Source of the DNA: Auanema rhodensis
Lineage: Eukaryota; Animalia; Nematoda
DNA: 64,000 nt
Assembly: GCA_964057225.1 (NCBI GenBank)
Contig: OZ059899.1
Location: forward strand, 14,942,001 to 15,006,000
Reading direction: 5' to 3'
Within the stretch, counting starts at the first letter, position 1. Every line of letters begins with the position of its first letter. The notes under the pieces are model-generated. The model had not been told where the DNA came from and did not search any database. It saw only the letters and a program-made list of their open reading frames with translations. This document shows positions 36,745 through 43,876 of this stretch, piece after piece. The position numbers and the translations under genes are program-made.

Positions 36745-39036
<2,292 letters not shown>

Positions 39037-39197
39037 TAATAAGGATGATGATAGATTGTTATGTTTTCATGTTGTTAATATTTTATATGATTTATACAGT
39101 ATTTTCATATTTTTAGCAGTATTATGAGGTTTTTTAACCCATTTCTTATCTTTTACATTTTTTCTTTGATGGTTTTACGTACTCTATCTTCAGCACA

Positions 39198-41286
39198 ATG
39201 TCATTGAATTGCCACTTGTGCCCTTTTATGGGGTACACAAGAGATGTTACTGCATTTGTGGATGAATCTCGAAATTTTTGTTATATAGATAGATGCTCTT
39301 CATCGTTTACTAACCCCCAGGCGTTGTGGGAACATATACATTTGAAACACAGAGCGTGAGTAAAGAACCCTGTAATCTAGTTTTAACTGTTCGATTTTAG
39401 AGTAAAATGTGCCCACTGCGGAAAAATCGTTTTAAATTTGCTCCCTACAAGTGGAGATTTGAATGTTGTAACATCAGTTAATAATCTTGCAAAAGTAATT
39501 TTATTTTTAATGGGAAATTGAATTATCAAACTGACCTAATTTTAGAATATTCAAAATAAAAAAAGAAAGTTTAATGCTACTGCTGGACCATCTACTTCAT
39601 CGAGTTCCATTACAGCAGCTTTCAATACAGCAGTTGGATCATCTACTCAACCTGAAGGTAAGTTAAAAATATCAAATATCTTTGAATATATTATGTTAAC
39701 TTGATTTTTTTAAAATATAATTTTTCTTATAGCTCCTAAAAAGTTAAGGAGATTCCATGATTTACTATTGGAGGGTCACAAAATTTGGGAATTCGCCACA
39801 TATGAACAACTCAAAGCATATTTAAGTGGAAGAAGTGACGATAGCATAATTGCTCTTTTAGTTAGGTATGTTTATATACATTTGGAATTAAAATAAATTT
39901 TTTATATTAGATCGGAACTTCTCGTCTCTAAAAGATCATGCAACAAATGTGGAAATCCAATGAAGCTGAGGTCTCGCTTAGGGTCATATGTGAAAAATAA
40001 TCCCACAGTAGAAGTATTTAAAATATTTCTTGTTTATTTACTGAGATATATTGTGATTTAGTGGAGATGCCGTAATAATACTAATGGCAAGAAAAGAGAT
40101 TGCTCCACACAGTCTTGTAGAAATGGATCATTTTTTGCTTCATCGAACAGTAGTTTGCAAAATCAAGTTGAAACGTTATTTCAGTGGAAAGGTGTTGTTT
40201 AAATGTTTCTTTATTAATTCTATTTTTAAATTTTAGATAACTTCATCACACTTGATGGCTCTCTGGTTAGCTTCTCCAGCAGTCCGCTTGTTAAGCAATT
40301 TTCTGATGTCTGGATCAAATTCCTCGACAAGTCAGACAGACCCAATGATCAACTGAGCATGTTTGTTGATTTTGTAACTTTCCCTGCTCCTCAGCCTGCG
40401 AATGATGAGCATATTGTTTTACTTACTGAACGAAAGTTCAATGGAAGAGCTGCTGCAAGGGTAATTCCTATAATAGCGTTTACCATTTGCATTCTAATTA
40501 TTAAGATTGTTCATGGAGATCCTCGATCGTATCCCCAACTTACTCAATTTATCACCGAAAGTGTTGCTGCTGGATCTATTTTGATTTTTGAAGATAGTCA
40601 AGGCTATTTTGCTTCCGAATTTCCAGGTTGGAGAACAACAACAGCTTCAACCTTGAACAGTCCACAGTTTCAGTAAGTTTGTTTCAAGTTACATTTTCCT
40701 CGTGAACCAAAAACTCATTTTGAAAAGTTGTTGCAACCGATTTCGTGTGCTTACACATTTAAAATAAAGCCCACTACGGCGCATGACACGCTCATTTTCG
40801 CGAGCCGGTCAGATTTCAAACTTGCCACCGTATATATCCTTTTACATATTTCATTAATATATTAAAGAAAATCTTTTTATTTAGGCAAACAAGTGGGGAA
40901 ATGATTCAGTCATGCAGTTCTCCATGTCGTTATATCATAACTACTCTACTGAACACTCCATACAGATGTCCAATGTCTGAGATAGTTCAAGAGTCGATAA
41001 TCAAGTACGATTACCTATATCATTGATCTCTCTTATCAATATACTCAACCTAGGTTCAACAACCGTGAAGATCTCCCTAAATTATTCTGGAAATTGCTAT
41101 CAGTTGACGGAAATGTATATTTTACCAAACCACGAAAGATGTAAGTTTCTTTTTTTCGAATTGAAATTGTTTTTGTTGCTTTTTTCCAGAAAACACGATA
41201 ATGCTCCTAATTCATCTCAAGTATCTCAAAGTTCATCAGTGTTAAATACATTTTTGGCTTTCCATGGATTAAAAAATAATCTCTAA
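39198..41286 (+). CDS. Zinc finger fused to a degenerate Merlin/IS1595 (ISXO2-like) transposase domain; probable domesticated transposase (about 475 aa, 10 introns)
   Basis: Intact spliced ORF. N-term CHLC..CYIDRC-x12-HIHLKH..CAHC; CNKCGNPMKL..WRC..C.TQSCRNGSFFASS (Merlin-type zinc ribbon); MFVDF; LTQFITESVAAGSILIFEDSQGY; TSGEMIQSCSS; IVQESIIKFN..LFWKLL. The CDS is well supported; the family call is by motif recall. Confidence 0.75.
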
Positions 41287-41560
41287 TAACATAAGAATAA
41301 TATTTATATACATATTTTCCTTTTTATAATTATTTTAAAATTTGATGCTAATATACGTAAAGCTAATATTTATATTTTCAGCTTGTAATTATGTATGTAA
41401 TGATTTTTACGATAATTTTTCATCTATTGTACGGGTTGTAAATAGAACTGGGGCCTTTTTATTCTTTTTATTTATTCTTTTTATGATTATGGTTCAGCAT
41501 ACCATATTTCATATATTTCGAAAACAGTTTATTTACTTATTTTTTAATAGTTCGATATAG

Positions 41561-43876
41561 ATGTTCAAAGCGGAAGAAGAGCAGGATATAGGGTTCTTAC
41601 AGTATGAGCATGTTGTGAATTCGGGTAACCTAGAGGTTTATGACCAAGTTATAGAAGAAAGCTCATTCTTTCTCTTTAGGTAGTTGGAGAGACTTTAGTA
41701 GATGTGGATCAGGTAGAAGGTGTCATCGGTGACTCAGGGTATAATTATGTGGATATTAAAGTATTTAAAAAATTTTATTTTGAGTAAGCTTATTTTATTT
41801 TCAGGAGAGTGAACCTGTTTTCTTGAATACAATGCAGAAAAGAAAATATAGGATGAGGTCAAGACCTCAGGCGGCTACTTACTATTGTACCATATGTAAT
41901 AAGCACTTACGATATCCTTCTAAAATTCGTGAGCACATGAGGAAACATACAGGTGAAAAGCCGTTTGCATGCCACATTTGTAGTGCTAGGTTTTCTCAAG
42001 CTCATGTACTGAAGGTATGCCAATTGCTCATCTGTTATATTTGTTAAAAATAATTTTGTAGGATCATCTGAGATCACATCAAGGCGAAAAGCCATTTAAA
42101 TGCTCCTTCTGTGACAGGTGTTTTGTTTCGATTGGTCATAAAAACTTACACGAAAAGGTAAGAAAAGTGCTCCAATGATTTTATTTTTCATTTATTTTGT
42201 AGAGTCATTTCCGTAGACCAAATGCTGAAGCTAGTTCGTCAGAACCTCCTGCCGACGGGAATGTGATTGGCCAAGTTTACATGTGTCCCGTCGAGAATTG
42301 TGGTTTTCAAAACAATATTGGTCAAGTGGTAATCTTGATAACACCAAAAGTTTTCTAATATCGATTTCGATCAGGTTGATGAACATATCAGTATGATGCA
42401 TTGTGGTGACACCGAATGGGCCGATGAATACATAGATGCCGAATATGAGTGTGAACAGCCAATACAACAAGAACTCATCCAAGATGAAGAATATCAGTAT
42501 TATGGCTATGATATGAAGCAAATCCCAGAAAATGTGTCTGACAATAACCAAGAGTACGATAATTCATATTTCTGCCAAGAAGCTGTACCTCCTCCAACTG
42601 AAGAAGTTGAAGTTTGATATCATGTTTTGAGAAGAGTTTTATTGAATTCTCTTAGGTAGAGACATCTTCTAATATGATGAAGCAAGAGCCTGAGGATTCA
42701 GTTGACTCTGTGGATTCGGTTGAATATGCCATGGAAGGGTAAGCATTCATTGACTTAATCATATAATATAGCTTTTGTAGTCCATCTACATATGAAGAGT
42801 GTGCTATAATACCTGGCTCTGAAAGAGACGAAGAAATTATGTTCGAAGGTGAAGAAAGAGTCCGCGTTTGGATTGATCCACATCCTCCAAGGAAAGGACG
42901 GCAACATCCCGGTACAAGTGGAGACATCCCAGTTGGTTTTTAGATAATTTCTTCTATCTACGCTTATTCTTGTAGGCTATGGAAGAAGTAGTAGTAGATG
43001 CCCGAGTATTAGAAATGGTAGCCCCCAAGCGCTATCCTCCCTATTCTAACCGGAATTCACGAGCCAAAAAACCAGCTCGGAACCTGGATTGGATCATTGA
43101 TGCAGTCGCGAAGGTGTGCCAACTTCTTGTTTTTTAATATTCTTGGGAAATTGTTTTGATGCGAGAACTAAAATAGCTGTTCCAGGGACATGATGTAGAT
43201 CTTGCGTCACCACATAACAGAAGGAAACCCAAAATTCATGTCTGCTTATATTGTGGAAAAACAGATAAATATCCTAGTAAAATTTTAGTAAGTCATTCCA
43301 TCAGTTTGACTAGATTATTGGCCAATCCTTCAGGCACATCAGAGAACTCATACCGGAGAAAAGCCTTATACTTGTGATATTTGTGGAATGGCATTTGCTC
43401 AAAGAACTCCACTTAGGTTACATATTAGACGTCATCTGAATCAGAAACCGTGAGAATATTGTACAAAGACTTTGAGATTCAACAATGATATTTATAGATA
43501 TGTATGCTCATTCGAAGGTTGTACAGAAGAATTTGTTTCTGGAGCCCTCTTAAATTTACATATGGAGAGAAAACATTTAAAAAGAAGGAAATACGTTTGT
43601 ATTAAAGGATGTGGTCGTTTCTTTGCCAGTGCTCGTAATCAAAGATATCATGAAGAGAGGTGCTTATATAGTAAAGATATGGAGCCAATGTATCCTGATA
43701 TAGTATATGAAAGTCAATCTAGTGTAAGTTTAGGTTTTCTTTGAGAGTTATCAAAGTTATTTTCTTTGTTTAAGGTTGAAAGGCCAAATGTTGGCTACGT
43801 TATGGATGGTTTAGTCATGACAGATAATGAAGTTGATACAGTTTCAGAACAAGTGGAAGGAGAATATTTTGATTGA
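41561..43876 (+). CDS. C2H2 zinc-finger protein B, paralogue of protein A
   Basis: [32 protein letters not shown]..; acidic linker; [12 protein letters not shown]|G; [15 protein letters not shown]|[30 protein letters not shown]; CSFEGC; CIKGC; ends EYFD stop. Confidence 0.9.

Follow-up and report, generated by a model that had tools for sequence, protein, structure and literature searches.

A spliced and expressed gene lies between two C2H2 genes

We analyzed a 64,000-nt stretch of the genome of the nematode Auanema rhodensis (GenBank assembly GCA_964057225.1, contig OZ059899.1, positions 14,942,001 to 15,006,000 of the forward strand; from here on referred to as the window) and focused on one gene, located at 39198..41286 on the + strand. 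All coordinates are positions within the window, and the gene model was rebuilt from the raw sequence. Overall, we consider it likely that this gene goes back to a eukaryotic Merlin (IS1595-family) DDE transposase that was domesticated and became fixed in Auanema as a single-copy host gene, and that its product is a nuclear DNA-binding factor that is non-catalytic.

The coding region consists of 11 exons (39198-39355, 39401-39494, 39546-39657, 39733-39865, 39911-40013, 40062-40191, 40237-40460, 40506-40672, 40885-41004, 41054-41140, and 41190-41286) and encodes a protein of 474 amino acids. All introns have GT..AG boundaries, the exons remain in frame, and the introns measure 45-75 nt each, apart from a single intron of 212 nt. 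The initial annotation, made from the letters of the window, had described an intact 11-exon open reading frame (ORF) with ten host-type introns, and transcript data bear this out: assembled contigs of ~1.5 kb in four public RNA runs skip exactly the ten introns with zero mismatches to the window, and therefore must be cDNA. All ten GT..AG junctions were seen in the four runs. The contigs also fix the donor of intron 5 at 40013, and the residues VKNNPTVE thereby lie inside the zinc ribbon described below.

All contigs begin at 39192, at an AG acceptor (39192/39193), and one bears 4 additional unmatched letters at its 5′ end. These starts put a tcag acceptor (39190..39197, + strand) at the 5′ end of the mRNA, 4 nt ahead of the ATG, which would fit trans-splicing of a downstream operon gene. 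The 3′ UTR spans 41287..41356 on the + strand, with the contigs of the four runs ending at ~41344-41356. Upstream, on the same strand, lies a multi-C2H2 gene with an acidic N terminus (36850..39036), identified by Pfam matches to zf-C2H2 and zf-H2C2_2 in the orthologous protein model (P0001:1-548, see below) and by collinear matches to the orthologous locus L001; its stop codon at 39036 leaves a gap of 161 nt to the studied gene. Downstream, a second C2H2 gene (ATG at 41561, + strand), identified by Pfam, a direct repeat family (D1), and synteny, starts ~200 nt after the transcript end of the studied gene. The operon-like spacing noted earlier on either side (stop at 39036, transcript start at 39192, transcript end at ~41344-41356, and next ATG at 41561) was thus recovered, and, judged by this spacing, the studied gene is probably co-transcribed with both flanking C2H2 genes.

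Parts of the protein align with a Merlin/IS1595 transposase in the same order

The first 61 residues (39198..39427, + strand) form a zinc-finger module in which a C2H2 finger with the spacing C28-x4-C33-x12-H46-x4-H51 is flanked by a CxxC pair on each side (C5/C8 and C56/C59). Pfam matches of this module to C2H2 and BED models are subthreshold, and its ESM features are weakly C2H2-like; the ligands are kept in the ortholog. The module is absent among the IS1595 reference proteins described below, and no similarity was found between it and the flanking C2H2 genes. Two basic patches follow. KKRK (residues 88-91; 39555..39566, + strand), which resembles a nuclear localization signal (NLS) and may function as one, is kept in the ortholog inside a linker that is only 40% identical, and PKKLRR (residues 123-128; 39735..39752, + strand), which marks the start of a conserved block, reads PKKIRR in the ortholog.

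The remainder of the protein can be matched to the IS1595 family part by part. A putative four-Cys zinc ribbon (C176, C179, C203, and C214; 39939..40103, + strand), split by intron 5, aligns to the invariant IS1595 residues C34, C37, C51, and C56 and belongs to the motif CNKCGNPMKL...WRC...C...RNGSFFASS (residues 176-228). It is followed by a helical region (residues 232-279; 40155..40343, + strand) that hhalign aligns to the IS1595 helix-turn-helix, with W269 and R278 at the positions of the invariant W109 and R116, and that is strongly kept in the ortholog. In the RNase H-like core, D288 (40368..40370, + strand) corresponds to the first catalytic Asp and is located in MFVDF on a strand, β1, predicted by AlphaFold2 (AF2); it aligns to the invariant D136 and is kept in the ortholog. 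The second catalytic position is occupied by E347-D348 (40590..40595, + strand) in ILIFEDSQGY, at the end of β4, and the ortholog has D-E, as in the IS1595 consensus TDE. By hhalign, the site of the family motif HTNxIE is taken by G378-E379-M380-I381-Q382 (40895..40909, + strand; within TSGEMIQS, residues 376-383), a segment with little conservation between the two species and with an indel. Further on, a conserved helix, IVQESIIKFNNR (residues 407-418; 40982..41066, + strand; split by intron 9), has E410, N416, and R418 at the positions of IS1595 E276, N282, and R284. The C-terminal tail, LNTFLAFHGLKNNL (residues 461-474; 41242..41283, + strand), has no IS1595 counterpart, is identical in the ortholog, and may be an interaction motif. 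Every motif quoted in the initial annotation, from the CxxC..C2H2..CxxC module through KKRK, PKKLRR, the ribbon signature, MFVDF, and the later blocks, was located, and the candidate metal ligands and basic patches are conserved in the second species, Auanema sp. JU1783.

Profile, feature, and structure comparisons support descent from IS1595

The references for comparison were obtained with a degenerate DNA pattern for HTNxIExFW, which gave 120 bacterial loci and, from these, 56 nonredundant ORFs; Pfam detects PF12762 in 56/56 and PF12760 in 53/56. The IS1595 proteins aligned directly are therefore bacterial only. When a two-species alignment of residues 122-474 was compared with the 56 references by hhalign, we obtained a collinear match of 237 columns covering positions 15-297 of the 311-position profile (P 4.4e-5, score 40.5), compared with scores of 15.2±3.0 (maximum 27.7) for 100 column shuffles and 16.7 for the reversed query. 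The two halves also match when taken separately, residues 122-243 to profile positions 15-79 and residues 244-474 to positions 171-297, each with P~3e-5. A custom hidden Markov model (HMM) built from the same 56 sequences found three collinear segments in both species, with one-sequence E values of 7e-6 and 4e-5. The residues that hhalign places at invariant or near-invariant IS1595 positions are C176, C179, C203, C214, W269, R278, D288, Y352, E410, N416, and R418.

Comparison with the ESM Atlas gave the same family. By features, the nearest clusters to the C-terminal 307 residues are IS1595 (score 0.92-0.94), as are 10/10 of the best named hits, and by structure the same part matches arthropod and bacterial IS1595 clusters with a template modeling (TM) score of 0.61-0.67 across ~269 residues, the best matches being arthropod PF12762 clusters of Merlin type. 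The DDE core without the ribbon retrieves PF12762 in 94/100 feature hits and matches by structure with TM 0.62-0.70, covering 187-193 of 202 residues. We further note that AF2, when given an alignment containing IS1595 proteins, models strands β1-β4 and helices α1-α2 with a predicted local distance difference test score (pLDDT) of 63-91, and that a Foldseek search with this model returned ISXO2-like/IS1595 proteins at the top of the AlphaFold database (AFDB; E 1.7e-5) and integrase, RNase H, and Hermes folds from the PDB. Taken together, the profile-profile and HMM comparisons and the ESM feature and structure matches support descent from a Merlin/IS1595 transposase, as had been proposed for this locus.

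The AFDB cluster hits also included several animal proteins that carry host-factor annotations and have an ISXO2-like transposase fold over part of their length, for example "Forkhead box protein N4" (747 amino acids), "Ecdysone-induced protein 63E" (825 amino acids), and a "CXXC-type domain-containing protein." These could be misannotations, insertions, or further fusions between host genes and Merlin.

The third catalytic Glu is lost in both species

The first catalytic Asp is present (D288), but the neighboring Glu of the family's DE pair is Phe here. At the second position, E347 is followed by D348, and the D-to-E spacing of ~35 residues is retained. Where the family has HTNxIE, the protein reads SGEMIQ and its ortholog HGDAALP, and in the hhalign alignment the third catalytic Glu (E248) corresponds to Q382, or to Pro in the ortholog. 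Alternative alignments place K/K or D/S at this position, and no register gives a conserved Glu. An intact DDE triad was therefore not found, D288 being kept, the second position being E/D and the third Q/P, K/K, or D/S. The initial annotation had the third Glu replaced by Ser: its loss stands in every alignment tried, whereas the replacing residue according to hhalign is Q382 and not Ser. Judged from these alignments, catalysis has likely been lost.

A syntenic ortholog in a second Auanema species is under constraint

Residues 245-373 plus an in-frame intron, compared exhaustively by phmmer with 1.84 billion cluster representatives, retrieved one protein, P0001, a 996-amino-acid "unnamed protein product" of Auanema sp. 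JU1783, which was mapped to locus L001 (GCA_943334845.2). Word-based protein searches with the C-terminal part of the ortholog, the ribbon region, and the full fused model returned the query alone from collections outside which many nematode genomes lie, and no homolog outside Auanema was seen in the protein collections searched, whose coverage of such genomes is poor.

P0001 is itself chimeric (L001:8001-12456): residues 1-548 belong to the upstream C2H2 gene and residues 549-996 to the ortholog, wrongly fused. It also ends early (…KSRKT) by intron read-through, and the conserved last exon at L001:12363-12456 is missed. When mapped on L001, the ortholog has 12 exons, including the last exon absent from the public model, as well as an intron that the window gene does not have. 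This 41-nt intron (L001:11549-11589) falls inside the single exon 7 of the window gene (40237-40460), and this one-intron difference indicates that an intron was gained or lost after the species split.

The ortholog occupies the same slot in JU1783, in ~17 kb that are collinear in both species and contain genes for G-alpha, ero-1, a Yip1-family protein, a C2H2 protein, the studied gene, the second C2H2 protein, and further genes. The proteins of the two species are 68% identical overall, and neighboring genes show similar identities. Within the studied protein, the zinc ribbon (residues 176-243) is 96% identical, residues 122-175 are 80%, residues 244-318 are 73%, residues 319-374 are 46%, and the linker (residues 85-121) is 40% identical. 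In the ortholog, the final 14 residues are retained, as are all Cys/His ligands and the two basic patches. The proportion of synonymous differences (pS) is 0.81, which is saturated, and the nonsynonymous distance (dN) is 0.22 overall, 0.03 in the ribbon (residues 176-243), and 0.13 in the region preceding it. Because the synonymous distance (dS) is saturated, an exact dN/dS is not computable. At the level of sequence, these values show purifying selection on the coding region, strongest on the ribbon and helical part; conservation of exons versus introns at the nucleotide level is blurred by the short introns and was not used. The gene had been described as old, and this holds back to the split of the two Auanema species, no homolog having been seen outside the genus in the collections searched.

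Both flanking genes are of the Krüppel type, with acidic N-terminal regions and similar DNA encoding HTGEKPF linkers (38021-38079, 41934-41992, and 42065-42123); they may be paralogs that bracket the domesticated gene, and the bracketing by two C2H2 genes is kept in Auanema sp. JU1783. Intron 8 (40673-40884) is four times the length of the other introns and contains a unique GC-rich stretch at 40769-40808. This stretch is not present in the orthologous intron and showed no Rfam match, repeat copy in the window, or unusual folding energy; no Rfam families were found in the window as a whole.

The gene lacks the hallmarks of a mobile element

Mobile Merlin elements have terminal inverted repeats (TIRs) starting with GG, a target-site duplication (TSD) of 8-9 bp, and multiple copies. 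No TIR-like inverted repeats flank the studied gene, where only AT-rich chance pairs were detected, and no second copy of the gene was found in the window or in the 20-kb orthologous locus L001. Spliced transcripts, a syntenic ortholog with saturated dS and low dN, the absence of TIRs, and the absence of an extra copy in the window and L001 together support domestication, and the initial annotation had likewise argued from the introns and the lack of visible TIRs that this is not a mobile element.

Interpretation and alternative explanations

A domesticated Merlin transposase that serves as a host DNA-binding factor would work as follows. The protein would act in the nucleus as a sequence-specific binder, with the zinc ribbon and helix-turn-helix recognizing a DNA motif, ancestrally perhaps the terminal repeat of the element, and with the added N-terminal C2H2 finger and the two basic patches assisting recognition. 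The RNase H-like core, in which the Glu of HTNxIE is gone, would be a scaffold for folding or dimerization rather than a nuclease, and the conserved C-terminal tail would recruit partners.

Several points weigh against this interpretation. The Pfam models PF12760 and PF12762 and the NCBIfam IS1595 models gave no match even at E≤10, either with exon pieces of the window gene or with the ortholog (P0001:542-996 and 780-996), so the protein lies outside the family as it is operationally defined. Pfam is uninformative on single exon pieces, as intron 5 divides the ribbon between two of them; the best Pfam match of the ribbon is Zn_ribbon_recom (E 7e-4, under its cut-off), and PF12760 is not matched. 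A tblastn search against plasmids also gave no match. With curated models and plasmid tblastn silent, the case for homology rests on targeted and model-based methods, and the profile comparison proposed for this locus came out divided: the Pfam and NCBIfam models do not recognize the protein, whereas hhalign and the custom HMM, both run against verified IS1595 proteins, do. The hhalign probability is just 69-83%. The single-sequence AF2 model has a pLDDT of 36 and is unusable, and, because the alignment given to AF2 for the better model held IS1595 proteins, that model and its Foldseek hits, although they show the expected ISXO2-like/IS1595 and RNase H-like matches, are not independent and serve as a consistency check only. 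Its input was built on a MAFFT alignment, which misplaces the first Asp and the C terminus relative to hhalign. The C-terminal alignment is ambiguous, in that FWKLL may pair with FWslL of the catalytic helix (score 20.1, versus 20.4 for the other register), and MAFFT favors a variant of this FWslL register; we prefer the other register because it keeps the ~35-residue spacing and fits both the helix count of the models and the Atlas coverage of 187-193 of 202 residues. Acidic residues lie near all three catalytic positions (D288; E347/D348; and E379, which is Asp in the ortholog), and, given this nearby E379/Asp, a complete loss of catalysis is probable rather than certain. The selection estimates rest on one species pair, two species being known. 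Finally, DNA or chromatin binding, nuclear localization, and dimerization are putative, being read from the sequence.

These acidic residues raise the alternative that the protein is still a nuclease or recombinase, acting through D288, E347/D348, and a relocated E379, and that it might cut host sequence, for example in programmed DNA elimination. Acidic residues indeed stand at or adjoin all three positions in both species, and E379, or its Asp counterpart, lies on a predicted helix, three residues ahead of the aligned Glu position. Moreover, recent preprints show that early Auanema embryos discard as much as two thirds of their germline DNA, with breaks inside a 29-bp palindromic motif common to Oscheius tipulae, and zinc-finger proteins or a transposase are the candidates suggested by the authors for the machinery (10.64898/2026.08.27.747507, PMC13060919). 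However, HTNxIE..FW, the most conserved motif of IS1595, is gone, the Glu beside the first Asp is Phe, and the helix that bears the third position differs more between the species than any other part of the core and has an indel (residues 319-374 being 46% identical). In addition, Oscheius has the break motif too, whereas the databases searched, which cover those genomes poorly, yielded no homolog from beyond Auanema. We therefore consider retained nuclease activity unlikely.

A second alternative is that the gene never derived from a transposase and encodes a lineage-specific zinc-finger protein whose likeness to IS1595 arose by convergence or chance. In its favor are the silence of the Pfam and NCBIfam models, the identity of only 16-21% to IS1595 proteins, the frequency with which zinc ribbons arise, and the fact that the ESM feature and structure searches rest on one common model. 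Against this, two nonoverlapping halves of the protein match the correct, collinear parts of the profile with P values far beyond the shuffles and the reversed control, landmark residues are conserved beyond the ribbon, and the DDE part alone retrieves IS1595 by both features and structure. Such convergence appears to us improbable. The last alternative, that this is a Merlin element, either mobile to this day or immobilized only recently, or else a decaying pseudogene that resembles a gene, is largely refuted by the ten spliced host-type introns and expression, by an ORF intact at the same locus in two species despite saturated dS and with low dN, and by the lack of TIRs and the single copy in the window and L001.

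A possible link to programmed DNA elimination

One specific role deserves mention, although we regard it as very improbable: the protein, or a complex of which it is a subunit, might recognize the 29-bp palindromic "sequence for elimination" and trigger chromosome breakage in Auanema. For this, it could act with the two co-located C2H2 proteins and rely for the cut on a remodeled active site or on a recruited nuclease. Such a role is at odds with the loss of the catalytic motif and with the fact that no homolog was detected outside Auanema in the collections searched. If it were true, animals would have a counterpart of the domesticated transposases by which ciliates eliminate DNA. The genus Auanema has CRISPR and RNAi tools, and a putative sequence-specific binder derived from a transposase is an obvious candidate for the elimination machinery, and one that is cheap to test.

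DNA-binding regulators and programmed nucleases have repeatedly arisen from domesticated transposases. Considered as a domesticated Merlin transposase, the gene is a clean case, being expressed, syntenic, and under selection, with a putative DNA-binding module that is nearly frozen. Standard domain annotation misses it, however, and the public database misannotates it as part of a fused 996-amino-acid protein.

Comparison with known systems

The protein shares with Merlin and bacterial IS1595 transposases (ISXO2-like; PF12760 and PF12762) the order of a four-Cys ribbon, a helical DNA-binding region, and an RNase H-like core whose C-terminal helix reads E..N.R, as well as the first Asp, the second acidic position, and the ~35-residue spacing between them. 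Unlike them, it falls under all curated HMM thresholds, has lost the HTNxIE/FW motif, and carries an extra N-terminal C2H2/NLS-like region of 121 residues and a conserved C-terminal tail; its gene is interrupted by ten introns, lacks TIRs and a TSD, and is single-copy (window and L001) in a syntenic position.

Among domesticated DDE genes and host fusions are those derived from pogo (CENP-B) and hAT (ZBED), SETMAR, THAP9, and PGBD (Cosby et al. 2021, as cited in PMC8101967). Like these, the studied gene is immobile, selected, and expressed, with the DNA-binding domain best kept, the catalytic residues eroded, and a domain apparently added; unlike CENP-B, ZBED, SETMAR, THAP9, and PGBD, it originates from the Merlin superfamily. 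A survey of eukaryotic Merlin elements found Merlin in nematodes, named copies in Stentor and Perkinsela as its only proposed domestications, and mentioned an uncharacterized chimera of C. brenneri (PMC8101967). In the literature searched we found no characterized Merlin-derived host gene in animals, and these protist candidates and the C. brenneri chimera were all that it contained, which agrees with the initial annotation, whose author was not aware of a well-characterized Merlin domestication in nematodes.

As with PiggyMac/TPB2 and the TBE transposases of ciliates, which execute programmed DNA elimination, the gene derives from a transposase and belongs to an organism that removes DNA from its somatic cells at defined sites. 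Those proteins retain their catalytic triads, and their roles are proven, whereas the one studied here has lost the third residue and its link to elimination is purely circumstantial. On the evidence, the gene falls outside the operational definition of IS1595 (Pfam domains, DDE triad, and TIRs) yet descends from this family, and we conclude that it is a new case in the well-known class of domesticated transposases.

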